64,000 bases of DNA from Ramazzottius varieornatus (taxonomy: Eukaryota; Animalia; Tardigrada), in the NCBI GenBank assembly GCA_001949185.1, contig BDGG01000002.1, positions 1,727,631-1,791,630 of the forward strand, written 5' to 3'. Below are positions 907 to 51,011 of this stretch, piece after piece (position 1 is the stretch's first letter; every line of letters starts with the position of its first letter). The notes under the pieces were generated by a model, which made no database searches, was not told where the DNA came from, and saw only the letters and a program-made list of their open reading frames with translations. The position numbers were made by a program, and so were the translations under genes.

Positions 907-3154
<2,248 letters not shown>

Positions 3155-10890: not shown

Positions 10891-17845
<6,955 letters not shown>

Positions 17846-23238: not shown

Positions 23239-26200
23239 ATGAGAAGTTTATGCGGGGAACATCTGAGGTTCATCTTGCTGTTATATCTGTGCAAAGCTCG
23301 GGAATGCGAAGTGTTGCCGCGCATTTCTCTAAACGGTATCGGTAGTTCTGCCGCTCGACAGGTGATGGAGGCCGTGCTGAGCGCCTACAAACTTGTGCGG
23401 AGTAACGTGGTAGGCAACTACACGATGGAGACACGTTTGTCCAGTCTCTTGTTCCGAGTAGTCGGCGGTCGAGATCCCGCCATTAACGTGTCGTTTGGGG
23501 CAGTTTTCGGGCAAACACCCGTCGACACCACCAACACCCTCATAACCATCCCCGTCATGGCTCAGTCCATCGTCATCATCTACAACCTTCCCAACATCAC
23601 CCTGCGTTTGGACAAGGCCCAGTTCGTCGGTATCTTCAGCCGAACCATCAAACGCTGGTCGGACCCCAAGCTGGCCACAGCCGGCGTCCAACTGCCCGAC
23701 GCTCCCATCGAAGTGTGGATCCGTGCACAAGGCTCGTCCGGACCGTTGGTCCGACGATTGATGGCCAAGTATGATAATTCGGACATGCCTGATAATCCGC
23801 GAGACTACTGGCCGCAGAGTCTCGACTATAGGACGGCAGACTCGGCTTTTGGTGAAGCGGGAGGGGTGGCGTTCTACAACAATACTATTGGTTTCGTCGG
23901 TTATTCCACCTACATGACCAGCTGTAAGGAATTGGACAGAGTTGTCCTACAGGCGGCGTGGATGCCGAATAGCGCAGGCGTTAGCATAGAACCGACACCG
24001 GGAGCGGTGAGTATCGCTCTAAGTTGCCTGTCTCGCTCCCAGTACAAGCAGGAACAGGAAGCTTGGGCCAGACGGAAAGACGGCAGACTGAAAATCCAAC
24101 CGTAGAAAACTGCCGAAAAGTACATGGGTGTGAATTACACCCTTACGTACGTACTTCAGTTCCGCTGTTTCGGAATCGTCTGGCCCAAACTTTTTACTGG
24201 CTCAAACTTCCTTTTCGTACGTGTGGTGATATTCATTGCTGTCGTTGCAGCTGAAGGATAGCATGGCTCAACTGACTTTTGACGACAATTATCAGGAGGC
24301 CATTCTGGCCCCAGATGGGGATACCGCCTACCCCTTAGGTTCCTTCCTTTACGTTGTGGTCAGGAAGGTTTCCTCGGACGCGGAGGTCCAGCTGGACTGT
24401 GAGACGCAAGCCGAGATATTACGCTTTACCTTGTGGCTGGCGACGAGTGAAACTGGACGTGCCATCGCCAGTGACAACTTCTTTGTGTCCCTGCCACCCA
24501 ACTTGCTGGCCACTGTGGTTAAGCCCGCTCTGCAGGAAATGCGCTGCGGATACGACAACTTGGGCGTAGTATGGGACCTGGTCAAAGCCGAAGTGGATGC
24601 CGAACATGCCGTCATCGAATATGGGTAAATCTTTCAAACCTAGGGGTGGAATGTTACTTGGAAGGCCGGCGAAGGAAACGCAGGAGATCGGGCTTTCAAG
24701 TGGCGCGGTTTTACGGTGGTTTTGCTTGAAAGCCTGCGTCACTTGAGCCAATCATCTTGTAGGTTTCGTTGCCTGCCTGCTTTTTCTGTTTGTCTACGCT
24801 TTGTACCAAGATATTCCGCGAAAGTTGGTGGGCTGATTTTGTGACACCGCAGGTAGGTTGGAAATTGGATTGACCGGTGCTTTGCTGATGGTGGTAGCGT
24901 TAGTCGTTTGGTTGGCTCACAAATTGTGGCTGCATATGGTGATGTTCCGACAAGCTCAGCGGCAAATCTACGTGGTACCAGGGAGGGACATTGTTATTAT
25001 TCATGCCTCGCAAGAAAAATACGAGCAGATGATGGTGGCTCGGTGCTTCATGGAAGGACGCGAGTCGCGACCCGTCTTTGTCGTTGGCGAGTATCAGGAA
25101 GACGTCGTCATGCTCCGCCGGATGGACATTGTCATTTCCCAAATCGACATGAGACTTCGCTTGTGTCTGGTACGCTTGATGAAGAAAATGCGACATCCAA
25201 ACATTGCGCGCTTTTATGGCCTGACACAAATCAGCGGATTTCAGTCCAAATGCTTCCTTATCAGCCAGTTCTGTAAGGTCCCCACCACATCATTAAAAAA
25301 TTCGACCAAGTGTAACTAACCACTATTCTGGAAGGTCCATTAGGTGATCTGAGAACCGCGTTGGATAACAAGCGAAACGAGCTAGACGCACCGATCAAAT
25401 TTGGCATGACGAAAGGCATCACCGAAGGTTTACTCTTCCTTCACTCCAAGGGGATTGTTCACGGTAACCTCCGCAGTACTTCGGTGTACTTGGAAGCCGA
25501 CTGGACCACCAAGATTTCCGACTGGGATCTGACGTCCATCGAGGTCCTCGCTGACAAGTTCCACAACCGGGAGCGTGTTGCGCGCTTCAACCTCAGCGAG
25601 CAAGAAGAAGCCATGTATCTCCCGCCTCTTTTGTGGTCAGCGCCGGAAATTCTGCGGGCCGTGGCCAAAGACCAAATTTTCCGCCCTACTAAAGAGTGTG
25701 ACGTGTACAGGTGTGCTAACAGTTTTTGCGAAGTGGAAGGCTCAGATGGCATATAATTCAAGTCGGTAACAATGGAAATGTGCGTTACTTGAGAAAACAG
25801 ATTTGGCAAGACCTGTTTCTTCGAACCGGCGCATGCTATGGCAGCTTATATCGAAGACTTGCGCCACTTGATAAAACATTGTCCACGGTTTGTTTCGTTC
25901 AGCCCCCAAATGAAATAGTATATTTTGACGTTCACATTTCAGCTTCTCCATCATATTTTTCGAGATCCTCACCCGTGATCTTCCTTACGACTACCACCTG
26001 GTTCCGCAAAGCATGACATACGACCGTTTACTAGCTATGGTCCGTCGTTCAAAGAATCCTCTTCGACCACTGGACTTCAAAGAGAAGGACCAGATCTGGC
26101 AGAATATCCCCAGGTCAGTCATCCAGATCATGAAAGCCGGCTGGTCGCCCGACCCCACTCGTCGACCGACCATCCATCACATTCGCGAGATCCTCCACGC

Positions 26201-28777
26201 TGTCAGTTCTGAGATGAAGCGCCTGGCTGATCTGACCATCGTTCACACCCGCGCACAAATCGAACAGTACAAGAGGAACATTATCAAGAACAATGAAGAA
26301 GCGCTAGAGTTGATCAAGGATTTAGAGAACACAAAGGTGGACTTCCTGACGCGGTGGGTGTACGAACTGACCTTGAGTGGGCAGGTGATCGAACCACGAT
26401 GTTATCAGGTCTTGTATGTTCTGCGCTGTGCCTTGGTCAACTACGAAGCTCTCTGTACTTCGACCCACGGAGATGCGGTGCTGTATTTTGTCGACCGGTT
26501 CTATCGGATTATTGACATCGTTCTCCCACCAGATCGAAATATCCACCGTTTACATTCTAACGGCGACGAGATTACTATCGTGGGTGCGCTCCCTGTAGGC
26601 GGTGTGGAGTACGCTTCGAAGCTGGCGATTCTCGCATTGGATGTTTTAGTCGCGGTAAATTTCAACATGAGTTCTACCCGTTTTCACCGATTCAAATTAC
26701 GAAATCACCTACTGTTACACTATTTATACTTATCTCAAAAAAAATACTGAATATGATATGTCTAAACTAGACAATTTCGCCAAGTGCCGCATTCCTCCAG
26801 ACATCGAAATCGAAACCGTGCGCCACTTGGGAAAACCATCAAGCTTGACGAAATCGTTTTCCCAAATGGTTCATCCTTTCGCCCAACGACACTTAAAGAA
26901 GTGCGCCGCTTGGAAAGACGATCCGGTCGAATTTGTTCGCTGAGCTTCCATCTTGCCTCAAACTCAGGATCTCGAGGGAAAGAAACCGTATCCCTTTGCA
27001 GGTTTGGTCGGCGGACTTGCTGGACATAGACTGGGACCGAATGGAAGTCAGGATTGCCTTGACATGTGGGCCCAGTGTGGCCGGGATTTACGGCAACAGC
27101 CATCGGTCTTTCACGGTGGTGGGTTCGGCTAGCGATGAAGCTAGCTTGGTGGAAAGTGCCGGTGCCACTTATCGCGTCCTGATGAGTGAGGCCTACTACG
27201 AAGCGCTCAAAATGTACCCGGACTTTACCGCCCAGGAAAATAACCATGATAAGAAAGTCCTTCCTGGCGATCAGAAGACTTACTGGCTACGGAAGAAGGA
27301 CAACTACAAAAACCAAAAGATTTTAGACGATATCGCTAAACTGTACCCACCACCCGACTCTCGAGGCATCGTGTCAGAAGATTTCCACATCCGGTCAGTC
27401 AGTTATGAAAAACTCATGTGATTGTAATTAGTTTAATTTTTGTTATGAATACCTTGTCTTCTTGCAATTTCAGATATTTTCTTTGAGATTCGATATAGGG
27501 AATTTCTTTGCAGGTCCCGCGATCGCCGCAAAGCTCAAGCAGCCAAAGCCTCTCTACAAGCAGGTCCCACCGGTTCATACATCGAGAAAGATCTCCGCTC
27601 AGGCTACCTCATCGAACACCGCGATCGCAGTAAAGAAACAACCAGCGTACTTTCCGTCGTCCAGACCAAAGACGCCCAGAAGAAGTCTCGGCCACGTTCC
27701 ACCACCAAGGATCTCCGCAGCAGCAGCAACAACACACCCTCCGCTATCTTCGGCAGTATGGTCGGTCCTCAAGGTTTCACCTTCTTGAAGGAGCCTTACC
27801 GCCGCGAGAAGATCCGACAACATGGCGCCTTCGTTCTCAACCAGGACCATCTAGTCGCAACTATGCTGACCGGCCAGCTCGGCCACCGACGAGTTCAGCA
27901 TGCCCAGACAGCTCTACTGACCGTCCCCAGTACGCACCACCATCATCATCACCACCACATGCATCCTCACCGCCACCACTATCCTCACTCTCTCCACGGG
28001 TATGTACCGGAGCACGACAACATCTTCCTACGAGTGCCGATTGATGTGCGCCATGTTATGTCTGGACCTTCAGTGACTTCGGCGGCTTTCATCGTATCGG
28101 ACCAACCTTCCGGAAGTCAGATCCTTCAAATTGACATTCCGACCGAAAGATCACCGCTGGGACAAACTGTGGTTGCTCGACCCACCAATAAACGAACGAG
28201 TCAGTCAGATGAACAGATTAAGCAGACTGCTTCGGAGGTTGTGGAGGAACTCGACCGAACTCGGTTGACTTCGACCGAACAAGAAACCAGCGAAGAAGAA
28301 GCCAAGAAGAAGGCCAAGCCTAGCCTGGTGGAGGAACGCATCGCCATGTACGAGCGGAACATACACAAGAACCACGGGGAAGATTCGAGTCGTGTGCGCG
28401 TCAAGCACCATCGTCACAGTAAGAAGAAGCGACGGCGTAGCAAGCCAAAGCTAGCGCAGCGTACATCCTCCACACGGTCGGACAAGCTGCGCAAAACCAG
28501 CTTGTGGGTGGCGCAGTTACCCGACACTTCGGTCTTGCTGGAGGAAGATGATCGCCAAGCCGAAGGAGCGACCGACGAAGAAAAGGAAGAAGGAAAAGAA
28601 AGCAGATCCAAGTCGCGGATTCGAAGAAGGAGTAAATGTCGAAGGAAGAGTACTCGATCGAAAAGGCGGAGAAGAACAACGGAAGGTCTGGCCGATCAGG
28701 AAGAAGGGACGCCCATATTGAGTGTGGAAGTGACGGACGACGAGAGGACAACGGAAGAAGAGGATGAATATCTATAG
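23239..28777 (+). CDS. Receptor guanylyl-cyclase-like protein: signal peptide, PstS-like (type 2 periplasmic binding) ectodomain, TM, kinase-homology domain, degenerate class III cyclase, low-complexity tail
   Basis: Ectodomain ISLNGIGSS, IPVMAQSIVIIYNLP, GIFSRTIKRWSDP, IRAQGSSG, AYPLGSFLYVVVRK, FVSLP align by eye to PstS; TM IGLTGALLMVVALVVWLA; KHD MRHPNIARFYG, HGNLRS, LLWSAPEILR, CDVYSF; cyclase-like NGDEITIVGALP, VRIALTCGPSVAGIYG, KTYWL. An intron at ~27394-27513 joins in frame to the 27758-28777 ORF. Confidence 0.82.
24698..24744. repeat. N27 palindrome unit (rGC intron)
   Basis: AAGTGGCGCG-N27-TGCGTCACTT. Confidence 0.7.
25744..25869. repeat. Paired N27 palindrome units (rGC intron)
   Basis: Units 25744-25790 (27 nt) and 25824-25869 (26 nt). 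Confidence 0.65.
26782..26911. repeat. Paired N27 palindrome units (rGC intron)
   Basis: AAGTGCCGCA-N27-TGCGCCACTT and a second unit 26864-26911 (28 nt). Confidence 0.7.
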
Positions 28778-29254
28778 TTGATCTCATCGATATAAAGCAA
28801 TCATGGAAATTAAAAGGGTGGGTTAGCTAGCTCGATTAGTTCGACATCTGTATTTATTACAGTGTAAACACATTATCGACTTCCGTTGGAGACATATTAA
28901 AAAGTGAACGCTCAGCATGTGAAGGATGATGGTTGACGTGTAAATTCCTCAAACGTATGAGGACCGTTTAGTACGTCTCTCCGGATCTTGAAGTTGCCCA
29001 GCCGATATCTGTCCGATGTCACTGTTCTATGACGGCTAATTGATCCATCCAGTACCATGGAGAAGTGGTATGTCAAGACGGAAAACCGAGCTTGGGGATG
29101 GAGCAGCGTGTTAAGTGCTGTCCCACAAAGTTCTACTTTCCAGTCTTCAGATCTCGGATTACTCTTTTCCGGCTGAATTAGTTATTGGCATCGATGTATC
29201 TAAACTGCTAATGTGCAGATGTGTCTTGCGCGCTGAATTCTGAGCGTATCCGAA

Positions 29255-30158
29255 ATGGATATCGAGAGGCTGAAAGTGGACCTGGACGGTATCAAGAGCC
29301 AGCCGGGCCCAGAGCTGGACGAGGTCAGCCCGCTGTCCGGCCTGACTATTAGACAGCGTCTCTTGATCGAACGCAGCTGGCGGGAAGTGCTGCAAATAGG
29401 CCCCGTTAAAGTCGGCATCGAACTTTTCAAACTGTAAGAGGACTGGATTTCTCCTGATCTAACTAACTGCAGCTTTTTCGTGTACTGCATTGTGCTGCAG
29501 GTTCTTTTCGAGACATCCGGAGTACGTTCAGCTTTTTCGCGCTCTGCGGGAGATACCGCCCGACAAGCTGCAGTCCAGTGCGCGATTCAAAGCTCATGGA
29601 ACCATTGTTGTACAGTAAGCCAATCACTAAACGTCCTGGTAAAGGTTGCGCATAATCGATTGAGTCTTTTTTTTTCTCAGAGCGATCAGCGGTATTATCG
29701 GTAAGTAAGCTGAATTTGCCGAAGATACTACTTGCTGTCAAGTCGCAATCTTCATTTCATGACAGCTAATCTGGAAGACGGAGAGACCATGGTAGATGTA
29801 CTGCAGAAAATCGGTCGGGATCACGTGCGTCGTCACTTGACACCTCAACATTTCGAGGTGTGCCGTTTGATTCTGGTGCACTTCTCACTAGAAGTGCCTG
29901 ACGTGAGAATCAGAACTTCTGATTGTTTAGAGTCCGACCCACAGCAAGTTTACATCTATCGTTTTACGTCCATTACAGAATTTGAAAGGCACCATCTTGC
30001 TGCTGTTGGAGACGGTGTTGGGAGAGGCATGGAGCGTTGAAGTGGCCAACAGCTGGCAGAAGGCCTTAGGCGCCGTCATGAGTACCGTTCAGAGTGCTAT
30101 GGCAGGCGAGGAAACAATCCAGGACATTAAGCAGGCCTTCGGACAAACCGACACCTAA
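29255..30158 (+). CDS. Single-domain globin (5 coding exons)
   Basis: Spliced: ...LIERSWREV...GIELFKL|FFSRHPEYVQLFRAL...FKAHGTIVVQ|AISGII|ANLEDGETMVDVLQKIGRDHVRRHLTPQHFE|NLKGTILLLLETVLGEAWSVEVANSWQKAL...TDT*. CD1 Phe, E7 His and F8 His present; introns at the ancestral B12.2 and G7.0 positions. Confidence 0.93.
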
Positions 30159-30321
30159 TTTCCAGCTGGTCTTTGCGTAATTATTGTCACCATCGCTTCC
30201 GATCTATCTACGACAAATACGACACAAATCGTTTTCACCTTAGCTAGGCCTTCTTTGCGCGTTATGTACGTATGAAGTAAACTGATACCTTTGGGTTGTT
30301 TGTGTAAAAGAAGACGACGCT

Positions 30322-33300
30322 TCAGCCGCTGTCGCCCGTTCCATAAATATCTTCGTGATATCTTTCCCCAATCTGCAAAAGTGTAAAACCCATCAGTTAG
30401 CAAAGCCTTTAAGCTCTTTTTGATTAGCTGTGCTGGCTTACTTTTAGTTTGTCCAGTAAGCCTTTGGCTTTATCTGGAGTCAGTCCGCGTTTCACGAAGG
30501 CCTCACGCAGTGCATCGGCAACACCGTGCGCCATCGTTACGCCTCCGCAGATGTAGATGTGGCCATTACGGTCCCTGACGTCGACTAGGAGTCGATCGGC
30601 CACGGCTTCCACCGTATCCTGAACGTACATCTGCAAGGAACTCGACATGGCTATGTGATTGTCTTTAGCGGATAATCGTTGCCGTACCTTCTTGACGCCC
30701 GATTGACGCGAGACAGCCAACTGGAAATCAGCAATGATCTTGGTTCTGAGCAATAGATCAATTTCATCTTTGAAAATATGATCGATCCGGGCGTCGCGAC
30801 ATCCAAACATCAGTGTCACATTGGGTCTCTCCACTTTAGTCTGCTGAAGGTGCTGCCAGAATGCGCGGAAGGGCGCAATGCCGGTGCCGGCACATATCAA
30901 GTAGACCGGAGTTGATGGATTGTCCGGCATGTAGAAAGAAGGGGCGCTAAAATCAGCAATACGTTCATCAGCTCGCTTTGTTCGACAGCAAAACCAAAAT
31001 TAGCTTTTTCGGAAAAAGCGAAAAGAGCTGAATTGAAGACAGAACGTCGGGTGCCTGAGGTGGCATTGGCCCTACTCGTACAACGATTATGGCGCGCAAA
31101 ATGGACCTGGAAATGCGGCAGACCCTACGCTTCGTGAGCGGACGGTTCTGGTTTCGAACCTCGGATCCGCCACTTTTGCCTGACCGAAACTCAAACTTTG
31201 TGGTTTTCACATTGAATTTGGACTACCCGTTATACTTTTCTGTACCGTGGTTCGCTTCAGGAGTACGAAAAAGTGCTGGCTTTTTTTCGGTCTGTATTTA
31301 AGGCTGAAAGGCTTTTGCCGTGGGTGGTGGCGTACCTGCGGACGAAGAAGAGACAGCCACTCTTCGAAGGGAGGTTGTTCAGGTAAGTGGTGCACAAGCC
31401 ATGGTGCACCGGACCTTGTCCATTCTGCGTTCTGAACGACACGATACCGACGGTCAGATCGAAAGTCTGCTCTTTGGTCAGCGGGGACGAACTGACCGAA
31501 TAATATCTCGGCTGCAGAAGCGGCAGTTCCAGGAGCAGCAAGGTCGGATCCGCCTCCACCGATGGGAACTCCTGCAGGACTTCCAGCAGGGAAGGCCAGT
31601 TGAAGGCTCTCCATGCTTGATACTTTTTCGAGTCTTTACCCAACTGCCTCAGCCGCTTCTGCTGGCTTTTATCACTAGCCAGGTCTCCAAGATGCGCCAG
31701 AAGGGTTTGCGAGGGTGGCGTGGTAATGTCGAGAAACGCGGCAAATAGCGTGGATAATGGCATGATGGGTAGACGCTTGACTACCTTCCACGACGCCTCG
31801 TCGTTCTCGTCGATAACGTCGTCGTAATCAGAGTCTAGTACCATGACTTCTAGCTGGACGGGCCGCTGACCGGTGCGAGTCTCAATGTCGAGGCGCTTGA
31901 GCAAGCTGGTCACTGTGGCCATGTCGTTTTGAGCAAAGATGGCGACGTGGTCGCCTGGTATGTACGACACCGGGGTTTCGCTTCGGAACTGTACCAGGAT
32001 GGTCTGTCGGTCGGAGGAAGGACTTTGTAGCTGCTTCCGACCGAGAAGTTTTCCTACTTGCACTTTCTTGTTGTGTAAGCGACTCAGAGCTGCAACCGAA
32101 AGACAACAACAGTGGGACGTCAACCATCTGAGAAAGGAATCACAGTACGAGGTAGATGCCATAATTTGGGCAAACTGTAAATATGCGATGCTAGTGAGGC
32201 ACGACGCCGGTCCGGTTTCACTGCGTGCACAATGGGGGTGCATTGTCACGCGTGTGTCCGTACTGCGAGATAGCATCGAATATCTAGAGTAGCTGTTTCC
32301 CGGACGTAATTCGGGTAACCCATATCTCTGCACCTGTCATGCCTACATGTGTACGCACTTTCTTTTAGTTTTGTAAGACAGAAGAATCGCTTTCATAAAG
32401 CTTTCAATCGGTTTATCAGACTGCAGTGCCTGAACTTTTGCATTACCCGTGTTGTGTCCGGAAAATGAGTATGTCCGAATTATGTTTTCTACCTCGTATG
32501 TGTACGAAAACATCCGTTTTTCCATTCCGGACATTTCCTTAAGAAACAGACTTACATTTTTGAATAAGTTTTGCAGGTCTTTGAACAACTCGTCATCCAA
32601 CGCGCGCTCAACCTGTACACTTGTCCAAGGCAGACACATGACTTCCGTCAAATTTCCGTTTTATTTTGAGACAAAGGCGGAGGTGTAAAAAAATGTGGTA
32701 GTATCAATCAACCAGTACAGCGGAACAGTTTTGAGGAGCTGGTTTGTCCGGAATGGAACGTGGGTGTGAGGGAAGCATAAAATTGATGCGAGAATGCTGG
32801 GAATCTGAAGACTCATTAAGTTTATGGAAAAGTTATTTACCGGAACGAATGTCTTCGTTGACTGGTGCAGACTTGAAGCCCAACCGGAATTTGCCTTTAC
32901 TCCAGCCAGCCCCACTATTTTTGCCATTCTTGAAATTTACACCGTTGGTTTTGCTGGAGGAAGACTTGGCGGGTGGCGCACTGATACCGAAAGCTTCGCA
33001 GGCCGCAGACAAGATTTCCAGGGACCATTCTTTGAAGGACTGGTCTTGACCGTTCAGCTCGTCACCTGTATGCATAGGCAAGATACGCTTGCCGCCCAGA
33101 TTGAATAGGCATTCGTCGACGTAATGAGCGAACGCGCAGTAGTGCGGGTAGGATGTTGAGCCCAGTCCGAAAACGGCAAAACTGTGGGAAAATAAAATTC
33201 TGACACACCCGAAATGTTCAAGAAATCTGAAAATCTGAAAATTAGACTGGAAAATAGAAGGCCGCCAGACAAAACGCACGGTACAAGGTCGTTGTCTCAA

Positions 33301-36300
33301 GTGGCGCATGCGATCATACAGTGACAATGAAAACGTGCGCCAGTTACAGAAAAGTTCTTATACGATCTGTTAACCGATCTCTCAAATACGTATTGCGCCA
33401 AAGACACTTTGCTTACTGGATATTCCTCAATATTCCGCTCGAATCTTCCGCCTTGCCAGTTTGCGATTTCCGGCGGTTGGGTTTCTTCACGGCGTCTTCG
33501 ATTCTGATGTATGACTCCGTTCGACTCCTGAGAACGTGTTCATAATCGAAATGCAATCAGCGTTTTATTTCCACATTGTAAATTAATCAAATGTTTCGCG
33601 GCGTTTGCCTTACCAGCGACGTCCACTTCGTTTCGGAGTAGATAAAGAAGAAGCATCTTTGCCGCCCGCAGTTGATCCACTTGATCCAGACATCTGGTGC
33701 AAGGCTGCTGCAAACTCTTTTCCGTTCTCGGGTGGGTCGCCATTGCCGAACGTACTGGTGATCACCAGAACCAATTGCTCATCCTTCAGATTCTGTACGT
33801 CGTACTCGTTAGCCGCGACGACGTTGACATCAAAGACCTACAGCGTTGCCAACTCACTGCGCGACTTGGGCACAAACTACGAAATATGAACCGTGTCTGG
33901 TAACATCAGTTCTTTCATACCTTTTTGAGAACGTCACCCATCATGAGGGCGAACTTATTGGACTTTCCAGTTTCGGAAGCGTAAATGACCGTGGCGCGAA
34001 CTTTGTCGGCAGCAGAGAGCTGTAGCTGCGGAACCTGGCTGGACCGGCTCGACCCCTGTCTATTCTGCAAGGTAGAAACGCCATCAATGACACTTTTCTA
34101 GCCGGTAGTTTCATCTGAGGTACGATACGAGGCTGTTAAGAGAGCCCTACAGATTTAGCGCTGGAACTTGTGCGGACTACCGGCTGCGCCAGTTTCTTGT
34201 CACGCCAGACATGATGCCTGTAGGGAGGGTCTTGGTACTCGTAGCTGGGAGTCAGACGGTACTCGATCATCTCTTGATGGAAGACTGGTAGCAAACTACC
34301 CCCCAACGGTGGTACAATCCAAATCTACGATGGATTACACACTATTTGCAGGTTTAGACCGCATGCAGTTTAGTCATGACATACCCAATCGGCTGGACAC
34401 CCTCCTCGCAATCGCTGTAACAAACGCAGATCAAATGTTCATGAACCAAATCCAGCCTGGAATTTAGGTAGCGGTACTGCACTACCGGCTATCCTCACCT
34501 GTTCGTTCTGAAGATGTGTCATGAAGGAGTCCGATATGGAATGATGGTCGGAAATGGTCACTTTTGCAACTTGCTGAGACAATCAAAAAGATTCATGAAA
34601 CCAAGACCGAGATACTTCGCTGCACTTAAACAGGCAACTGTACCTGGAAGCTATAGAGAACAGCGCGGTTGACCTCAAGGAACGTCTGATCTTTCCACAA
34701 AGAGGACAGCTTGCTGGTATCGAAGCCAAAGACACTAGCCAAGTCTTCCAAGAGGTTGTAGCGGTTGGCGTCACAGAAGTCACGCGCGACCTCGGTTTGC
34801 AAGTACCACCCTGAAACACAAAACGCCTGTTGAAGCCTCGATGTCTAGTCGGTATACGGGTACGGGTAACATTACGTACCACTAAAAGCACATGCCGGAA
34901 AAATCTGGCCGCCAATGTCCAGAAACATGTTGGCTACTGCTGGCAAAGCGTACCATCTTAAACCCATTTCCGCAAACTCTGGATACCTGAAGAAAAGGGT
35001 GGTTGACTGACTGGCATGATCATTTGACGAAACGAACGGTATACTCGGGGTGAGCGAGGTCAACTTCCAGAACGGCATCTTTGGGGATCTCAAAGTACTG
35101 CGGGTCTTGACCATTTGCTTGCAGAACTAAGGGAAGGACGTCAAAACGTCCACCGGGTCCGTGCCATCCTAATCTTTGACAAACCTATGGTGTAAAACAA
35201 ATCACTTGATTTTTCATTGAAAGAATGACAAGCAATTTTTGCTCTGTTGACATAACAATAATCACAATAGCACAAGCCATCGAGCGGCGCGTGATGTAAG
35301 TGACTAGCAATAGCTGAAACAGCATCTGCAGAAACTGACCAGCCAAACTTGAGTAACAGTTTTGACATCAGCGTTTCTCACAGGTATCGGTGTCAGTCAC
35401 TGTAAGTTTGTTACGACCCACCAGATGACACACCTTTCCCCGTCGGAAAACAGGACATTCATTATAGCAACGGAAATTCCGTACCTCGGTAAATTCCACG
35501 TTGGCAGGATCTCCGACGATGCTGCCGTCGGGCATTTTATACCCGGCATAGCGAACGAGCTGGGCATTCCAGATGCGAAAGTCGTCTTCTGGGCCGTTCA
35601 TGCGTTGTCGGAACAAAGTACAGGCGGAGCGGAGGTTACCTCCGTTCGTAGCGTAACGAATGTGCTTGACCAGAACGTCGAACATTTTCTTCGGGGTATC
35701 GCAATCTCGGCCATCGAAAAACTGCAGTAAACCCAGCAGTCAAGATTTCCTACTCGCCCTAGAAAACCCGCGATGAAATTACCTGAAGATTTGACCACTG
35801 AATACGGCCAATACAGCGTTGGGCGTTGCGCCAAGCTGTTCTAGCACCGAAGTACAGTTCGGGCGGTTCGAACTCGTAGGATCCCTTGGACAAGATGTCG
35901 TTCTCTACGTCTGCCCATCGTTCCCTGTGTGCCGAACTATCCAGCCTGCAAAAAGAAACCGAATTTGAGGTCCCTTGAATGAGACGCAAAAAGATCGGGT
36001 AGGTCTAAGAACAATTCATAACAACAATCTCCTGTTTTTGCCGGCTGGCGCGGATGGTTAATGACATCGTTGTGGGTTAGAATTAGAGCGCTATATGATC
36101 GTTTTCGAACTCAGCACCTCGGAGGCTCAGACCTCTTCATAATAAGACCAGAAGTAAGCTTACTGCTTGATATTCTCAAAGTACTGCTTGAAGAAGTCCT
36201 TGGTCTCTCGCAGAACCTCCTCTTGAGTACGGTTGGGGATACCGACTGGCTTGTCGGATTTCATCAGCGAAGCTGCGCACGTTGTTGCATCGCATTCCAC

Positions 36301-37440
36301 ACGCTACAAGGAATAAATAATGTAGCTACACAGTGAGAAGTCAGAAACGTAACCATCTTGAAGTTTATAATGATACGTTAGCTCACATTGCGACTTTTGT
36401 AGTGAAGGGTATCGACGATGGTTTTCCCGTCCAGCACATTGATCAGCTCCATAGGTTCCTGCGGGGTTTCTTTGTTTGAGCCCGCTGAGCTGGAAGATTT
36501 TGCAAGCTTTACAGGCTGACTGTCGGCGTTCCTTTTAGAGACCTGCATCGAGCGCGGGCCACCATTTGTGACGGGTGCCGGTCTCCGGTCCGTAAATGCC
36601 CGCCCATTGCCTGCATCCTCCTCTGTGTCTTCCTCTGTTTCCGGAATAGCATTCCGTCCGTCGCGGAAAACGTTGCGCTGTCGCGGAGGCTGTCTGGAGG
36701 AGTCTATGCGGACCAACGTAAGATTACTAAGTGACCCGAGTATCATTCAAGATCATAAATCAACTTAAATCAAAAAATCCTAAAATTCCATTCCAGTCTG
36801 AAGGAAATTTACCGATCGACTTCCCTAAACCGGAAGGCTAGCGAGATTTTCGTCGTAATAGAGTTTTCTCATTCAAAACCTTATTACCGTGATTGCCGTT
36901 TGTGAAAGACTTGCTCGATCTGACAGCTGTCTTCCCAAAACCATTTGAGGATCGCTGTAACTGGGACCCACGAGCTTGCGGTTGATCGTCCTCGTCGTCG
37001 TCATCGTGATCCGATAAGTCCGATTCCTGAAAAATGGTGTGTCCCTGCTTGCCTTTCTTGACTTTCATCCGGCCCCGAAGGCTACTCAATAGATCCATCT
37101 TGGCTTGTTCGGTAGCTTCCACCGTTTCGTAGTCAAGGATGGAGAGCTGCGAGTCCAGCCGACCGCGTTTCGGCGGGCCTTTCAGCATCAGCGAAACCCG
37201 TTGACCAGTCGGAATCTGATCGACCAACCGTAAAATCTGATCGAAGGTCAGGTCTTCAACGTCGACGGAATTGACTGCGCTGATATGATATCCCACTCCG
37301 ACCACCACCGGATCGCCGCCGGGCGCGGCTCCGGAGACCACTGCTCGGTCATTCTCGGCTCGCAGCAGGAAGCCAAACGGTCCTGGCGAGCTTCGCTTGG
37401 TCACCCGTAACTCGATCACATTATAGGCATCGCGATCCAT
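30322..37440 (-). CDS. NOS: Nitric oxide synthase with N-terminal PDZ domain, many exons
   Basis: PDZ ([16 protein letters not shown]..), Zn motif CDATTC, heme Cys [51 protein letters not shown] / [12 protein letters not shown] / [61 protein letters not shown]; ends [13 protein letters not shown] (stop 30322-30324). Confidence 0.96.
33299..33345. repeat. N27 palindrome unit (NOS intron)
   Basis: AAGTGGCGCA-N27-TGCGCCAGTT. Confidence 0.75.
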
Positions 37441-40806: not shown

Positions 40807-42614
40807 ATGGCGTTAGAGCCGGATCAAGCGCTCATTCATATGGTAACCGATGTTATTAGCGAAAGTCACTTGTCCTACCTTCGTTTTTCTGGGCTGTATC
40901 CGTCATCATGGAGAGTTGCCAGAATGGGCAAAAGCCATTCGAAACCGTCATGGGCGTTGATTTGGACGCACTGTGTTGCGGTTCTCATTTCCGCATTGGC
41001 GGTTGTAAGCCTGACGGATTATACAATGTAAGTGACTGGCTCTGTTGTACACAACAGTAAGGGTTGCGATACCTGAGTATGTAATACTTTACTGAATGTC
41101 GAGATTTGCTTGATAGGTATTTCATAAAAGACATAGCCAAGATGGAATTCTTTCGTTTTATGACCTTCACACTTCGCTTAGCCTTGACCGAACAAACGGT
41201 CAGTATCTTTGTTATTTTCATATGGAAACGACGAGAAATATCGGAGCTGCTGCTGGACATGTCGCGGATTCTGACCTGGATGGAAAAGAGGTATTCATTG
41301 CGTTTGAGGCGTATTCGAAACGTCAGCGCCCTCCTGGCTTTCATCTGGATCGGTTTTTGGCTGGGTGTTCACGTGATCGGATATATTACGTTCCAAATAC
41401 AGGAAGACCTTTCGACTTTGTTCGGTTTCACTAGGCAAGCTCGCTTTCTTTCCTTGGTTGGTGCGCAGGTTCCAGCTTACGTGGATGACATTGTGGGCGG
41501 AGCCACTCTCTTGATCAATACTCACACTGAATTGGTGGCAGCAACCTTTGTATATTCGATTATTGCTTTGATGATCACTGGATTTACACACGTGCTACAA
41601 GATCTGCAGAAGGTTGCTATTCTTCCATCCGAGAAGGAGCAAGTGATAGCTGTGCAGAAAGCATGCCGGCTGTATTTGAGATTTCGAACACTGACTGCCA
41701 AGTTTAACAAGTGTTTCGCTCTTTTGTTTGCAATATTCTTTAGTCGAGACGTCTGGTCTTTTCTGGTCGTTTACGCCGTTGCGCTAAGGATAGACAAGCT
41801 GCAAGGTCCCGAGGAAAGCCAGCACATGTTCGAGTACCGTAAGAAGAAAGATTTCGATCACGGCCGACATGATATCATTGTTGGCAGCATCGGTTTGGGC
41901 AATGCCGCGTTGAAGCATCTGCTGTGTCTTTACTGCCATATAACCGTAAGTCTAACGACAGGTTTACAAGGTATAAAAACGATGCATGATGTGACCGGTT
42001 TGTGTTTTGAGCTAAATTTATCATTCGTTCAATTTCAAATAGATCGTTATTTTAAGCCGCGCACTTTTCTAGCCAGCAACCGAGAAAACTGTGCCACTTA
42101 GAAGAACGATCACTGCGAGATTGTTTGTCGGTCTGGCAAATCTATTAATCTATCAACGACAGAAAGCTAGTCATGGTCTTGTGCCTAGGTTCGAGACATA
42201 GTTATGGTCTTGGAGGAGTTGGAAGACAAGATCGAATCGCAAGATGTCCAAGCAGAAGTCACGGAGATGCTGAGCAAAATTCAATCGTGCAGTGGCGCCA
42301 TCTCGGCTGGCGGCGTTCACATTACCACTGAATCTGCAATGGCTGTGCGTGATGTCACTCTTCGCAATCCGATGTTCCTAACGCTTACTTCTACTTGGTT
42401 TTGAGCGGGTGATTGCCACTGTTTGATGACACTAGCATCTTTCTTTTCATCACAGGTACTCGGTATGCTAGCGAGCTATGCTGTCATAATCTACCAGACG
42501 CGCGACGCAGCTCTTGGTGACCAAGAATACGCGAAGAAGACGGACCTACCGCAACTGGCCGAAATGATACGTGGCCTTATGCAAAATACCTCCACAAGCG
42601 ATATAAAATTTTAG
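40807..42614 (+). CDS. Gustatory-receptor-like (7TM chemoreceptor ion channel family) protein
   Basis: YLRFSGLYP near the N-terminus, several hydrophobic helices, C-terminal ISAGGVHIT..|VLGMLASYAVIIYQ matching the GR TM7 TYhhhhhQ motif; short 3' exons typical of GR genes. Confidence 0.75.
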
Positions 42615-42705: not shown

Positions 42706-42991
42706 CGAGGGGATTATGCCTGTCCCCACCTCTTTTTGGTCAAACTGTCCTGGCCGAACGAGAGAGGAGAGTCTCTTCTAGGATCCTGGAACAAACTACA
42801 GGGACTCGGAAGTGAAAGTCCATNNNNNNNNNNNNNNNNNNNNNNNNNNNNNNNNNNNNNNNNNNNNNNNNNNATGGACTTTCACTTCCGAGTCCCTGTA
42901 GTTTGTTCCAGGATCCTAGAAGAGACTCTCCTCTCTCGTTCGGCCAGGACAGTTTGACCAAAAAGAGGTGGGGACAGGCATAATCCCCTCG
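42706..42991. mobile_element. DNA transposon/MITE with >=118-bp identical TIRs and 3-bp TSD (TCA); centre is an assembly gap
   Basis: 42706-42823 is the exact reverse complement of 42874-42991; TCA flanks both ends (42703-42705, 42992-42994). Confidence 0.75.
42824..42873. other. Assembly gap (50 N)
   Basis: Run of n characters. Confidence 1.
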
Positions 42992-44437
42992 TCAGACCTT
43001 GCAAGTCTGGCCTTCGTAAATTTTTTTCGATCCATCTGTCCATCTGGTCGTTCAATCCACCTTCCAGCACACTTTTCCATGCACCGGTTTCGCCTGTAGA
43101 TAGATGAACCCACTGCATCGGGCAATTTCATTTGTTCCATAATTCGAGGCAGTAAGAACAATGGCCTACCTTTTCGCATATAGGGTGAGACTTTAAAGTC
43201 CATCACCCCATAGTTTTTGTCCTGCTCTTGTCTGTTGGTCATCGGGTTGTCCTTCATAGATTCGAAGGAGCATTCGCGGCAGATAGTCTCAATCTGATCT
43301 TTAGTCAAATCCTTCTTGAGGAACTTCGCGATCTGAGTGACTTCGGTGAACGTGTCTCTCTTCAAACGCTCGAACGAACAAATGTATAAGTTTTCCTTGT
43401 TGGGGATATTCCAATAGCTCGCCAGCTGATCAAAGTAGGGGGCCATACCAGGCTGGGCGCTTTGGCAGTCCGTCGGTTAACTGTTCGACAAAGTACGGAA
43501 TTTCGTGGTTGTATTGCACGGCCTCCAAACCGCGCAGCCAGTGGTGCATCAAGACTGCCACGTCTTTCGGGTTCCTGTACATGTAAATCATCTACGACAA
43601 AGGTAATTTGCCTTTAAGAAATTGTGGACGAGTTGACAGCACTCAGCTATGCACAGGAAGATCAGCGAAAGACCGGCAAATCGAGCGCACAGATTCCTGA
43701 TTGTAAGTGGCGCACAGTTCCAGTCGGCAACGGTAACCGAATGCGCCACTTGAGCGATCATGCGTTTCGGTTGCCAGCCTGCAAAGTTGAACTGCACCTG
43801 GGCTTTCTGCCAGATGCTTTGGGGAAATCCGTCAGCAGGTAAGTGGGTGGAGTAGAGACGAGGTGAGGGCATGCCAGCCAGACGGTTGATGTTCCACAAC
43901 TCAGGCTTCGCCATTTGCGATGGAATGACCTGCTCGATGAAAGGAACAGTTTCGCGGAGAGGCTTACCCGAGTGTAGGCATTGTGGATCAGCGTTGTTCG
44001 TAATCATGAGCACGATAGCTGCCATCCATTGCGACCCTGGAAAAAAACAGAACTCCCGCAACTGCTTGATCGGCTCTCTAGAACGTACCTGATTTTGGGT
44101 ACGAAGCGGAACAGATGTCGCCCTCAAGCGCTTCGAACCGCTCAATGTCACCGCTCTTAATTGGCAGGTTCCAGGGCTGCGGTACTGCAATGCCTTTGTA
44201 CCTGAAACTAGAAAATTTTATGCAGAAATCAGAAAATCGTTAACGGTTGTAGGGCGTCAACAATGGACTAGACGACTACTTTTACCAGTAAAAGTCATCG
44301 TCGTACGGGATACTGAAACAAAACTGCTGCCTAGTTGGGGAACGTGATTCCGGCTCCGATGTCTCACTACCCTCTATTGTGTTGTGAGGATCATGGCCGT
44401 CGTTCTGACCGATAAAAGCGGAAGGAGGGGAAGTCAT
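42882..44437 (-). CDS. Cytosolic-type sulfotransferase; C-terminus altered by transposon insertion, possibly decaying
   Basis: 5'-PSB loop ASYPKSG|SQW, PRLYSTHLP, YMYRNPKDVAV, SFERLKRD, CSFESMKDN, YMRKG|ETGAWK. Confidence 0.85.
43705..43751. repeat. N27 palindrome unit (sulfotransferase intron)
   Basis: Perfect arms AAGTGGCGCA-N27-TGCGCCACTT. Confidence 0.8.
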
Positions 44438-45003: not shown

Positions 45004-46919
45004 TTAGGAAGCCAGGCTGCTGTATTTGTTGCTGGCACCAAACGAGCTCGATGCCATGTGACTTCGCTCGTCACTTTCACCGTCCTTTTCATGCGCCTTT
45101 TTCCTTCTTTCATCTTCCGTGATGTTCAGCGGTTGCTCTTTAGTTTGACGATTACCCCAGATCATACCCAACGAAGTCACCGTAGCAATCACAGCCATAA
45201 CCAGAAGAAGAATGATCAAGTACCGCCACACTTCCTTGTCGCTCGTGTCCTCCTTCGTTTTGTCCAATATGCCACCAGCTATCAATGAAAACGTACCGGC
45301 ACCGATATACCGAAGAAACTTCAGAATGGCGTCCGCCACGCCGCGCGTGTGCTCGGGCGCTACGATGGAAGTGCTCGCTGAAGAGATGGGACTGAAGATG
45401 GCGTAACCGATGCCGATTAGGACCGTCATGATGATCGAGTTGAAAGAGTCGGAGGCCAAGTAAGCCGCGAAGGCTGTTAAGATAAAAACGGTGCCTAAAG
45501 TCATCCAATAATCGCGACGACCGGTCTTGTCCACAGTGAAACCGATCAGCGGGATGAAAATACTAAGGTCATAGACCAAACTGATGATATAAAGGGCTTC
45601 CATCTCCGTGTAACTGCCTTTACCCTGCAAAATACGAAACAAGCCGGGTAAATTCATTCGTGGAAGTTGGGCCCACAAATTTAGCACGACTGTCTCCCCA
45701 AGTGGCGCACGTTTTCAGCTCTGCTGGCACAAACGGTGCACCACTTGACGAAATCATTTTAACCGATGGCGCACGCTTTCGAACAACAATATTGGGCGTC
45801 TGCGCCACTTGAAAATCAGTTTTGTCGAGTCGTTCTGATGGGCTCCTGCATATTCGGATTTCTGAACTGTGGTTTTCCGCGATAGTTTACAGTGTCGTAC
45901 CCTGAGAAGTGTAGGGGCGTTGCTGGTGAAGGTCGAGATGATGACGTGAACCAGGAAGTAAGCAACGGCGAACCACCAATACATGGATTCGACATGCTTT
46001 CTAAACTGATGGTATCCCTTTTTGGTAGAGTCCCACAGCGTACTCTCCGATCCATCCTTGTCCTCGTTGCTGTCAATCCGACCTTGAATGAGAGCCGCGA
46101 GGGCCGCAGCGATAGTGAGCGCCACGGAGATCCAGATGGCATTGCTCATGCCGATGGCGTCTAACGTGGCGCCGTTGAGCAGGTAGGCACAGGCAGACCC
46201 AAGCCTTGCCAAGAGTATATACAACCCCTTTAACAGCGTGCTGTCTTTCCACAAGCTGTTGACTCGATGGCCACAAACGGTCGAACGGAGCCCGTTACCC
46301 GCGCCGTAAAGGATTCGTCCGATTATCAGGAGGGAAAAGGCCGCTGTGGTGTCTTCCAGATAAGACCCTCCCACGAAAAAGAACCTGTGCGAAACGTCAC
46401 TTGAGGGCGTCATAATGAGGGCAGGGCAAATGAACTGAACCAGATCATTTTCGCACGGGGCGCACCTTTTCAGCGTGCGCCACCTTAGCTAGTCGGCAAT
46501 CTGGTTTGATTCGTTTGCGCAGCATCCAAATGGTTAATATCCATAAGAGATATCATGGTCGGTACATACGAGCCGATTACGGTCAACGGGGCAGCAGACC
46601 AAATCATCCATTTTTGGCCGTATTGTTTAATGGCTAGCGCAGAGTACACTGCCAAGAATCCAGTGGCGTATGTGAAAGCTGCGGACAAGCTGTTGTACTC
46701 GGTGCTGCTGAGGTCTAGGCAGTGGTCCGGTGGCTTCTCTTCCGAGGAGCTTGATGTGGTGCTGGTAGTTGCAGACGTAGAACTGCCGGAATTGCGGCAT
46801 GCAGGAGAGTCGCCTTGCAGACGACGACTCAGCGGAGTCGTGATCTCCGAAAAGAAGTTACCGGAGAAGGCACACAGGCACGAACATGCCAGCACGATCC
46901 ATTGTCGCCTATTCGCCAT
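45004..46919 (-). CDS. MFS transporter, MFSD1-like, paralog B (3 exons)
   Basis: MANRRQWIVLACSCL..EITTPLSRRLQG, DHCLDLSSTEYN, LIIGRILYGAGNG, PLIGFTVDKTGRRDYW; same exon structure as paralog A. Confidence 0.85.
45700..45810. repeat. Paired N27 palindrome units (MFS B intron 2)
   Basis: Units 45700-45746 and 45764-45810, both spacers 27 nt. Confidence 0.8.
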
Positions 46920-47307: not shown

Positions 47308-49129
47308 TCAGTCAGAAAGCAGTGGCGTCGTTTCGTTATGTTTGGTTTCTTTTGCATGTTCTCTTCTTCGGTGTTCTTTTTCTGTTAGAGTCAGCGGTTT
47401 TCCCACGCTGCGATGGTTAGCCCAAGACAGACATAAGGAAGCCAGAATGGCCAGTATCGCCATGGACAGCAAGAGAAGCAACAGGTTCCTCCATACACCA
47501 TCATGGGTAATCAAGTCAACTTGCTCGTTCAAAATGGCACCGGCAATCAGAGCAAAGGTCCCCGTCCCGAAATAGCGCAGGAACTTCAGGACCGCGTTGG
47601 AGAATCCTTCGGTGTTTTGGGGAGCCACAATGGTCGTGCTCGCCGAGGATACCGGATCAAAGATGGCGTAACCGATACCCAAGGTTATGGTCATGACGAT
47701 GCTGTGGACCGTTGTGGAAGCGAGGTACGCCACGAAAGCGCTCATCACCACAACGGTGGCTAGAGTGATCCAGTTTTGCCGATATCCCGTGTGGTCAACT
47801 ACGAAGCCGACAACGGGGATGATGATACTCATGACGTACACTACGCTGATGATCGTAAGGGCTTCGATCTCCGTGTACCGTCCTCTACTCTGTCAGGGAC
47901 AACATGACCCGGTTGAAGCATAGTGAACTACCCCGCATCTTTACGATGAGCCCACAGATGGTACTTCGATCGGCAACAAACTTGCCCAGATCGTTTTTCC
48001 AAGTGGCGCGCGTTTTCAGTGTTGCTGCATGGCCTAAAGCGTGCCCGATTATGAAAGATCGTTGCTTACAGTAAATGAGGCACGAGCTCAGCCAACAAAA
48101 CTGTAAGCGTACGCCGCTTCGGAAAAGTGTCTTTCCGTGTTTGCTTGCCGAGCTAGCAAACTTTCCCTAGCTTAGTTCATGGCAATATAGAGAGATTTAC
48201 CACAAGTAAATTCGGGGCATTGGTTGTGAATGTCGAGACGATCGAGTGAATGAGGAAGTAGGGGACGGCGAACCAGCAGTAGAGTGCATCAACATTGGTG
48301 AAGAACTGATTGACTCCACGCTTCGTCGACTCCCATTTGCCCACACCCTCATGGTCCAGATCATCCTCTGTGTCAATGTAGCCTTGGAACAAAGCGGCGA
48401 AACTAGCGATAATAGTCAGTCCGACGGCAATCCATATAGCATTACTCATCCCGATCGCGTCCAACGTGACTCCGCTCAGCCAGAAACTAAAGGCGTTACC
48501 TAAGCGTCCACTCATCACGTACAGTCCCTTCATCAACGTGCTGTCCTTCCAGAGATGATTGACTCGGTGACTGCACACGGTCGTTCGAAAACCGTTACCG
48601 AAACCATAGAGCAATCTTCCTATCAGAAGCAGCGCGAAAGCGGTATCGTTGTCTTCCAAGTACGACCCGCCAACAAAAAGAAACCTGCATATAATGACAC
48701 AATAAACGTTCGTAGAATGGACGACTCTGAATAACCCAAGCGGAGCACATACCAGTATACTTACGCGCCTGTAACTGCGAGTAGTCCGGAAGACCAAATC
48801 AACCATCGCTGACCAGAGTGTTTGACAGCCAAAGCAGCAAAGACCGAGGCAATCGCGGTAGCGTATGTGAAAGTGGCGGAGAGACTGTTGTATTCGGTGC
48901 TGTCCAGGTTGAGACAGTGGTCCGGTTTCTTGTAGGCTGATGGGTCGGTGGCGTTGACTATTGCAGCGACCACAGTCGAATCCGTGTTCATATTGCTGAT
49001 AAAGGTGCACGCTAACGATTGTCCTTGTAGTCGACGACTCAGGGGACTGAGGATCTGTGAAAAGAAGTTACCGGAGAAAGCTAACAGGCATGAACAGACC
49101 AAGACAATCCATTGCTGCCTTCTCGCCAT
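47308..49129 (-). CDS. MFS transporter, MFSD1-like, paralog C (3 exons)
   Basis: MARRQQWIVLVCSCLL, DHCLNLDSTEYN, LLIGRLLYGFGNG, PVVGFVVDHTGYR; ends ETTPLLSD*. Confidence 0.85.
48001..48119. repeat. Degenerate paired N27 palindrome units (MFS C intron 2)
   Basis: Left arm AAGTGGCGCG at 48001; second unit 48073-48119 with 27-nt spacer. Confidence 0.55.
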
Positions 49130-51011
49130 TGAACTTCCTGCTAACACATTCGGCTCATCAGGCTGCCGTATCCGAAGACCGGGGACAGTTAGTCCATTTA
49201 GGAAGCATCCATCTGCTTGGCCCCGATACCCAACGCACGATATCCAACCACATGCCACTTCAAGTTTGCGGGAAAGACATGTAAACAGGAAATGCTCGAT
49301 CTCTTGTTTTGTAGTCTACGGTTTCCGTTCGCGACGGAAGTACAGTCAACAACGGTAGGACATGGCCTTGGGCTTGTTTTCCACTATAGCGATGTTTCTT
49401 CCTCCAGGCCAGGTTCTTAATGATCAGCGGTTCTTTCTTACCGTGTGAGAATGGGCAGTTAACCCGATACAAACAAAATCGGCCTGCTCGATAATCCATT
49501 GCAGTGAGGCACGCTTCCGGCCGATGGGGCTGAGAATGTCCTCCACTTGGGAGAATAATTTTGTCGAATTTTCATGCCGACATCCCAATCTTTTTCGAAT
49601 CGTTGTTCCACACAGGCGCAACGAAGTTCTCGGGTGCCCCCTCCCCCGCACCACTGCCCATCCCTCACCTCGAACTGTATTGCTCCTGCTTACGTTCGTA
49701 CCGGCAGCCAAGCAGTAGCAGCATCCTTCGTTTCCCTTTGACCTGGTTGGCCAGGTATGTCTTTCCAGGAGTGCCTGCCGTGACTTTGGAAATGCCGACG
49801 AGGCAGAGAACAGGAACGCATTCTTGATTCACCAATACTCCGCTTAAATGAAACATCAAGCGGTGATTTGTACAGTATAATTCAGCTAGACTGATATGCC
49901 ACATTTTCCAGATACTTTCAAAATGTTGCATATGCACTTGTTGCATTGTATATAACTACCGTTAATCACAAGATTCTTTGTTCCATCTACCTGACGCATT
50001 TATTTGGTCGATGTCTCGCTAAAGCTTTTTTAACATGGCTCTCAAGGGAGGCTTCTTCACTCCATGTCAAAGCGTGTAAAGCATGACATTCTGCTTCAGA
50101 ACCTATAACATTACAACGTTGTTAGTAAGTTTTAAAACGCATCCTGCCAGAAAAAAAAAATGAGCTGTCGGCAAATAACTTGAGATACATGTAGATCGAT
50201 GTTCCAAGTGGAGCCACACCAGGCGCATGAAGAATCGGATGATGAATTAACATACTGTTTTCAGATTCTTCACTGGCCTAATTTTGTGATGGAGCTTCTT
50301 CAAACGAGAATGTGGGTCAAGCCAAAGTATTACGTATCTTGAAGGAAACGATTCATAGCAAACCAGCATATCCGGTTTGCAAGCAACTTCCACAATACCA
50401 GCTGCACAATAACCAAGAAATGTCCCTATTGTATCAATATTCGGTCTTCATGTAAGAAAAGCAGCAGCTCGCTGCAATGTGGAAGCATAGAAAATACGAA
50501 GACTGCAGCGCCACGCTGCGGCAAGTTATCGACACCCGTCCCCGAGATAGCTGGAGTACGTGTAGTGCGAAGTAAGACTCACGGGTAGTGGTCTTTGAAA
50601 TTGAATGTGCGAGTACACGTCCGCGTACGGTGCTTCTCGCTGCTGTGCGTATCTGCATGAGACCGGTTCATGCTGTTTAGCCAAAGCACCATTCGAATTC
50701 CCGTTCATTCTGCATTTTCGAAGAAGTACCTCTTGATGCGCCATTAGGTACTTCACAAGACTCTTCTTGAGAAGGAACAAGGTACAGTAGCAAGCACAGT
50801 CACACATGGAGGACCGGGGTGTGATTCGAAAGACGGCTGCCACTTGTTGATCATCGCGCGAAGAAGCTTTGTTGTCAGCAGCTTCAGCTCAAGTGCACTT
50901 CCTTAACGTCTTGGCCAATACTTCCTTGAAATATGTTTACTTTCAAGACGCCGCCCGATCATTTCCTCTTGTCGACTTGTATGCTTAGTTTGCATAACTT
51001 TCGTTTACGCC

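Follow-up and report, generated by a model that had tools for sequence, protein, structure and literature searches.

The Ramazzottius varieornatus window analysed here is a stretch of 64,000 nt (contig BDGG01000002.1, positions 1,727,631 to 1,791,630 of the forward strand), carried by a 9.03-Mb scaffold that is the largest of this tardigrade. The locus under study extends from position 23239, the ATG of a receptor-like gene, to position 37440, the ATG of a nitric oxide synthase (NOS) gene on the minus strand. A globin gene, RvY_04003, lies between them. The globin and NOS genes are located on opposite strands in convergent orientation; about 8 kb separates their start codons, and each gene has its own promoter. 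No fusion of NOS and globin, no shared strand and no shared promoter was found when the sequence of the locus was read. The window has a G+C content of 45-51%, and its genes are dense and contain very short introns.

The convergent globin and NOS genes

RvY_04003 was read as five exons comprising about 194 codons. The annotated isoform RvY_04003-2 (P0169, GAU91816.1), which has a precomputed PF00042 match, was 100% identical to this reading over the common residues, and the junction of exons 4 and 5 was the same in both. The third exon is a microexon of 20 nt. It fills the gap between the parts of the Pfam Globin profile matched by exons 2 and 4, codes for the end of helix E and is required for the reading frame. 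Only with the microexon are His E7 and His F8 separated by 32 residues, and it was kept in the gene model because it restores this spacing, as found in neuroglobin and cytoglobin. A model in which the microexon was skipped and an acceptor at 29723-24 was used instead was rejected; it gave a spacing of 39 residues between the two histidines, and the acceptor was without a polypyrimidine tract.

The helix positions of the globin were assigned by register with myoglobin. On this numbering the protein retains His E7 (in KAHG), His F8 (in RDH), Phe CD1 (six residues past the C2 Pro) and Phe B10. Intron 1 is inserted after base 2 of the B12 Leu codon (B12.2) and intron 4 between the codons of HFE and NLK (G7.0). 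B12.2 and G7.0 are the ancestral intron positions of globin genes. In a PDB search, the C-terminal half was nearest to leghaemoglobin/non-symbiotic haemoglobin, cytoglobin, thermoglobin and flavohaemoglobin (E 5e-5 to 2e-3). Judged by these features of its sequence, RvY_04003 is an intact, intracellular globin with the 3-on-3 fold and belongs to the neuroglobin/cytoglobin/non-symbiotic-haemoglobin type.

Kumaglobin was considered as the identity of RvY_04003 and rejected because the PDB has no identical chain. None of the globin pieces had an identical or near-identical PDB chain, the best PDB match being at E 5e-5. The C-terminus of the globin, -QTDT, was rejected as a PDZ ligand, as its last residue is not hydrophobic. 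Word searches with a 108-residue stretch around exon 4, and then with RvY_04003-2, returned only the window open reading frame (ORF) and RvY_04003-2; globins of about 194 residues were outside the searched lengths, so these searches are uninformative on orthologs.

The NOS gene ends with a TGA at 30324..30322 on the minus strand. Five of its exons were matched by Pfam NO_synthase, and the reductase part was matched by Flavodoxin_1 (5.7e-13), FAD_binding_1 (1.4e-49) and NAD_binding_1 (7.8e-16). Full-length fish and tardigrade NOS proteins (P0007, P0005, P0002, P0170 and P0171) were aligned by tblastn along the entire window NOS. The oxygenase retains the Zn Cys-x4-Cys, the heme-thiolate motif, the arginine-binding Glu (WYLQTEV) and the pterin-site ADWVWIVPP, and in the tblastn alignment the FMN, FAD and NADPH motifs were all kept. 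The C-terminus reads RYHEDIYG followed by five residues. A 57-nt intron in the NADPH domain (~30640-30696, minus strand) is in frame and stop-free, and appears in plain ORF calls as an insert of 19 residues. The N-terminal 90 residues were matched by Pfam PDZ at E 0.02 with 15.7 bits, below the cut-off of 23.2, and they aligned with 37% identity (E 1e-10) to the start of P. metropolitanus NOS P0171, for which a Pfam PDZ domain is precomputed. The window NOS is a predicted full-length enzyme of constitutive type, with a PDZ-like head followed by oxygenase, FMN, FAD and NADPH domains.

In a search of all libraries with the FAD exon, two NOS fragments from close relatives were 94% and 81% identical to the window NOS. 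A second R. varieornatus NOS, RvY_14857, is located on a different scaffold of 1.8 Mb and was 55% identical, and the H. exemplaris NOS was 45% identical, both in the FAD-exon search. A word search added OWA50884.1 of H. exemplaris (154-kb scaffold) and XP_055327334.1 of P. metropolitanus (3.7-Mb contig), and H. exemplaris also has the NOS gene OQV13497.1 (248-kb scaffold). The maximum-likelihood tree, constructed from the FAD exon alone, placed all tardigrade NOS in a single clade with support of 100/99. The window NOS shares a long stem (0.61) with the two fragments; the branches of RvY_14857 and H. exemplaris OWA50884 are short. On this tree, the NOS adjoining the globin is the fast-evolving copy among at least two NOS paralogs of R. 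varieornatus. The annotated NOS protein of the window was not among the best 120 matches of a word search with P0005, and a metagenome scan with the NADPH exon of NOS gave 18 loci, all of them reductases of about 30% identity, with no tardigrade locus. One further NOS, P0172, belongs by its record to a sturgeon assembly and has the flag 'UNVERIFIED_CONTAM'. Its similarity to H. exemplaris NOS ranks just below that of tardigrade NOS, and its source may be an invertebrate contaminant.

The two stop codons are separated by exactly 163 nt, a distance that a first-pass annotation, made by a model from the letters of the window, had given correctly to the base. AATAAA and ATTAAA are absent from this spacer. 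The sole variant hexamers are AGTAAA at 30276 (plus strand) and AATAAT at 30185 (minus strand), and polyadenylation directed by them would give transcripts overlapping by about 130 nt. Because the spacer is without a canonical poly(A) signal and the variants imply an overlap of this size, the 3' ends of the globin and NOS transcripts likely overlap. The same annotation had proposed that the 3' untranslated regions (UTRs) abut or overlap; the layout leaves hardly any space for two 3' UTRs, and the overlap itself would follow from the position of the variant signals. No repeats or hairpins of note and no Rfam match were found in the spacer, and nothing relevant came from scanning the locus for Rfam families, tRNAs, repeats and tandem repeats.

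The receptor-like gene and other genes of the window

Exons 1 (1.4e-16) and 2 (1.1e-4) of the receptor-like gene cover positions 65-307 of 315 in the NCBIfam PstS model TIGR00975. The ectodomain was also matched by Pfam PBP_like_2 (9.3e-12) and by the PDB PstS structure 2z22 (3.7e-7); these PBP_like_2/PstS matches stand in place of an ANF-receptor ectodomain. Among the alignable phosphate ligands of PstS, Arg135 and Ser139 are kept, and Asp56, Asp137 and Thr141 are not. The kinase-homology and cyclase region was aligned to GC-A (E 2.9e-6, with the HGNLRS motif) and to GC-C. Compared with GC-A and bacterial cyclases, the first metal Asp of the cyclase domain is changed to Cys, the catalytic Asn to Asp and the catalytic Arg to Leu, and the second metal Asp is kept. 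In class III cyclases the two Asp bind metal, and the Asn and Arg act on the transition state. The gene probably encodes a pseudo-cyclase, and with a PstS-like ectodomain its product is a possible oxyanion sensor.

No H-NOX domain was matched on any scanned exon ORF of the receptor-like gene, including four ORFs for which matches as weak as E 10 were considered. Because it is without this domain, the gene would stand outside the route from nitric oxide (NO) to cyclic GMP. The first-pass annotation had called it a receptor guanylate cyclase (rGC) that is not a direct NO receptor, and this was borne out by the H-NOX result and by the replacement of three catalytic cyclase residues. Its identification of a NOS, a globin and a gene with kinase-homology and cyclase-like domains agrees with the domain matches. 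The term rGC fits less well, as the ectodomain is PstS-like and not of the usual ANF-receptor type. In a literature search, no paper was found on a PstS ectodomain joined to a cyclase-like receptor, and this combination may be the more unusual item of the locus.

Downstream of the receptor-like gene is an ORF with a stop at 28775-28777. It contains a His run (a tandem repeat of His codons, 27935-27988) and stretches rich in K, R and E, and its C-terminus is -DEYL; no Pfam match was found at E up to 10. Between the stop of this ORF and the ATG of the globin at 29255 there are 477 nt, the distance previously ascribed to the end of the receptor gene. The measurement stands, but the ORF is only putatively the final exon of the receptor gene and may be a separate gene. 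Both the promoter of the globin and the 3' end of the gene before it, with ATTAAA at 28809 and 28896, are presumably located in this spacer. Coordinates of all features of the locus are given in Table 1.

Table 1. Features of the NOS-globin locus. Positions are those of the window. For the NOS domains they are the limits of tblastn matches and not exact exon borders.
Feature	Position	Strand	Evidence or remark
Receptor-cyclase-like gene	23239..27421	+	Pfam, NCBIfam and PDB matches
Signal peptide and PstS-like ectodomain	23239-24625	+	PBP_like_2, PstS
Transmembrane helix	~24858-24930	+	
Kinase-homology domain	~25170-26195	+	PK_Tyr_Ser-Thr, 1.3e-7
Dimerisation helix and degenerate cyclase domain	~26427-26702, ~27035-27292	+	Guanylate_cyc, 2.1e-9
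Low-complexity ORF, 339 codons	27758..28777	+	ORF reading; without Pfam match
Spacer 5' of globin ATG	28778..29254	.	477 nt
Globin RvY_04003	29255..30158	+	Five exons, GT..AG borders, Pfam Globin, identity with RvY_04003-2
Globin exon 1	29255-29433	+	GT..AG reading
Globin exon 2	29501-29614	+	Pfam Globin positions 7-42, E 5.5e-4
Globin exon 3, 20-nt microexon	29681-29700	+	Strong polypyrimidine tract, consensus donor
Globin exon 4	29766-29857	+	Pfam Globin positions 51-81, E 0.015 (3e-4 on ORF)
Globin exon 5	29979-30158	+	Ends with TAA, 30156-30158
Stop-to-stop spacer	30159..30321	.	163 nt, probable 3' UTR overlap zone
NOS, complete	30322..37440	-	Pfam domains and tblastn with NOS proteins
NOS PDZ-like N-terminus	37174-37440	-	tblastn
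NOS Zn Cys-x4-Cys hook	36163-36300	-	tblastn
NOS oxygenase	34193-35956	-	tblastn
NOS FMN domain	32848-34010	-	tblastn
NOS FAD domain	31320-32093	-	tblastn
NOS NADPH domain and C-tail	30325-30948	-	tblastn

Further genes were found elsewhere in the window. They include a gene for an S-adenosylhomocysteine-hydrolase-like protein (1130-2198, plus strand), a flavin monooxygenase gene (6443-8909, plus strand), an ABC transporter gene (10891-14761, minus strand; ABCC-like by reading of its sequence) and a sulfotransferase gene (42916-44190, minus strand), none of them with an evident link to NO. Three related MFS transporter genes (4229-5784, plus strand; 45004-46919 and 47308-49258, both minus strand), two of which are in tandem, look like a local expansion of a gene family. 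An ORF of 331 codons at 41106-42101 (plus strand) has many hydrophobic stretches and no Pfam match, and may encode a lineage-specific membrane protein.

Explanations for the adjacency of NOS and globin

The genome of R. varieornatus comprises 55.8 Mb with 13,917 genes, and 23.9 Mb of it is intergenic (PMC5531438). On average about 1.7 kb of intergenic DNA separates neighbouring genes, and in a 55.8-Mb genome with such a span, tight gene spacing is expected. H. exemplaris and R. varieornatus seldom share local synteny (PMC5531438). The NOS, globin and receptor genes are probably ordinary, separately transcribed genes packed together by genome compaction, and their adjacency is then coincidental. 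Compaction, and not selection for a module, would have brought the ends of the NOS and globin genes together. The window NOS would make NO from arginine as any animal NOS does. RvY_04003 could bind O2 and consume NO, like most such globins, and any scavenging of NO by it would be generic globin chemistry rather than a dedicated partnership. The upstream relative of the cyclases, catalytically degenerate and with a PstS ectodomain, would be unrelated to NO. The identity, intactness, layout and paralogy of the genes are read from the sequence; the overlap of the UTRs, the activities of the proteins and the lack of a dedicated coupling are inferred. The NOS-globin pair was singled out only afterwards, when neighbours suggestive in any way were looked for, and no published NOS-globin gene pair was found in the literature searched, tardigrade-specific literature included. 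Expression values for RvY_04003 and RvY_04004 were sought in the supplements of PMC5531438 and PMC9145152, in which neither gene had a row, and searches of supplements and texts gave nothing for RvY_04002 to RvY_04005 or for RvY_14857.

Several points weigh against coincidence. The probability that a NOS and a globin specified in advance would be adjacent is about 0.1-0.3%, an estimate made with 13,917 genes, two NOS and a globin count assumed to be a handful. Coincidence is argued from priors and not from a negative test. Known functional partnerships of NOS with globins, together with one natural fusion, keep a coupling of the two reasonable by analogy (PMC6104048, PMC5394235, PMC9613979).

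A rival explanation, proposed in the first-pass annotation, is a dedicated source and sink of NO, in which the globin would be co-expressed with the window NOS and shape its NO signal. We consider such a pairing rather unlikely. In its oxygenated state the globin would serve as an NO dioxygenase, or in its deoxygenated state as a nitrite reductase, selection would keep the two genes linked, and the overlapping 3' ends would aid their co-regulation; this mechanism is likewise doubtful. It is consistent with the intactness of both genes, with the low a priori chance of adjacency and with the affinities of the C-terminal half of the globin, whose nearest classes are linked to NO chemistry. Precedents are the fused enzyme SyNOS (PMC6104048), the control of vascular NO by cytoglobin (PMC5394235) and the alpha-globin of the endothelium (PMC9613979). 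The further suggestion of the first-pass annotation, that the globin is recycled by the NOS reductase, drew no support from the sequence. The arrangement of the genes argues the other way: they are on opposite strands, their separate promoters are about 8 kb apart, and convergent overlap gives interference more often than co-activation. The pair was also selected after the fact. Finally, the NOS copy is lineage-specific and fast-evolving, and therefore any NOS-globin module would be young.

An overlap of 3' ends could instead make the two genes antagonists. Transcriptional interference or antisense small RNAs arising from the overlap would then render the expression of NOS and globin mutually exclusive, and the pair would act as a switch. 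The 163 nt between the stops, the missing canonical poly(A) signal and the variant signals implying an overlap of about 130 nt would all suit a switch of this kind, but in a genome this compact neighbouring 3' UTRs may commonly overlap, often to no effect, and no structure or repeat was found in the spacer. We regard a switch as quite improbable.

A broader proposal is that a dedicated, linked NO unit has arisen in the Ramazzottius lineage. Its members would be a fast-evolving NOS paralog with a PDZ and a private globin, with convergent, overlapping transcripts that couple the production of NO to its removal, and the PDZ-like head might anchor the unit to the PstS-type pseudo-cyclase receptor. 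The globin-NOS fusion of cyanobacteria would then have a counterpart in animals, with its two parts unfused. Such a unit is very unlikely to exist. Conservation and co-regulation of the pair, if shown, would make it the first example known to us of a source of NO wired to its sink in the genome of an animal, and it would provide a simple model, in an animal that survives desiccation, of how globins shape NO signals.

The possible anchoring of NOS to the receptor involves the two ends of the proteins described above. The homology of the NOS N-terminus with the Pfam-annotated PDZ of P. metropolitanus NOS (E 1e-10) would supply a binding domain, and the end of the low-complexity ORF, -E-Y-L, loosely fits the motif of class III PDZ ligands. 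This motif match is weak, and in an acidic tail an acidic residue at -2 is likely by chance. The PDZ of neuronal NOS prefers a terminal Val. The ORF is only putatively part of the receptor gene, and the PDZ match is under the Pfam cut-off. A three-gene signalling unit, in which the PDZ-like head of NOS would bind the acidic C-terminus (-DEYL) of the receptor-like protein so that PstS-type sensing of oxyanions controls NO and the globin buffers it, is on these grounds scarcely credible.

The yield of the analysis is at present mainly descriptive. It consists of verified gene models of a tardigrade globin and of a second and divergent NOS, and a corrected identity for the neighbouring 'cyclase'.

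Comparison with known systems

The globin domain of the cyanobacterial globin-NOS fusion SyNOS reportedly performs the conversion of NO. SyNOS of Synechococcus PCC 7335 mobilises N from arginine to nitrate (PMC6104048), and a preprint states that rapid further conversion takes up about 70% of the NO that it makes (bioRxiv 10.1101/2020.10.08.331702). This is the kind of chemistry put forward in the first-pass annotation. The window resembles this system in having a globin and a full oxygenase-plus-reductase NOS at one locus. SyNOS is one polypeptide, whereas in the window the globin and the NOS are encoded separately, by oppositely oriented genes that each have their own promoter.

Cytoglobin is said to be reduced by cytochrome b5 and its reductase, rather than by NOS. 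The cellular reducing systems that support cytoglobin are the subject of PMC7948950. Cytoglobin is described as a vascular NO dioxygenase that controls NO (PMC5394235), and alpha-globin is placed with endothelial NOS in the endothelium (PMC9613979). In both systems an intracellular globin sets the lifetime of NO derived from NOS. The window globin is like cytoglobin in its His E7, its His F8 and their spacing of 32 residues. We know of no linkage between the genes that encode the partners in either system.

The window NOS has the same domain order as metazoan NOS of the NOS1 type and keeps every cofactor motif. Its nearest full-length relatives are the tardigrade proteins P0170 and P0171, with 46-47% identity over the tblastn matches. 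It differs from NOS1-type enzymes in its fast evolution, seen in the length of its stem, and in a PDZ score that falls short of the Pfam cut-off. Kumaglobin, a crystallised hexacoordinate globin of R. varieornatus, is cited in PMC12403961. It shares its species and the globin superfamily with RvY_04003, and is a different protein.

The receptor-like gene is comparable to GC-A/NPR1 and GC-C in its transmembrane helix, kinase-homology domain, dimerisation helix and class III cyclase domain. It differs from them in its ectodomain, which is of PstS type and not an ANF-receptor, and in the replacement of one metal Asp and of the catalytic Asn and Arg. Among the systems in which NOS and globins are known to act together, SyNOS, cytoglobin and endothelial alpha-globin make a coupling of the two window genes a reasonable idea by analogy, but these systems do not depend on gene linkage.

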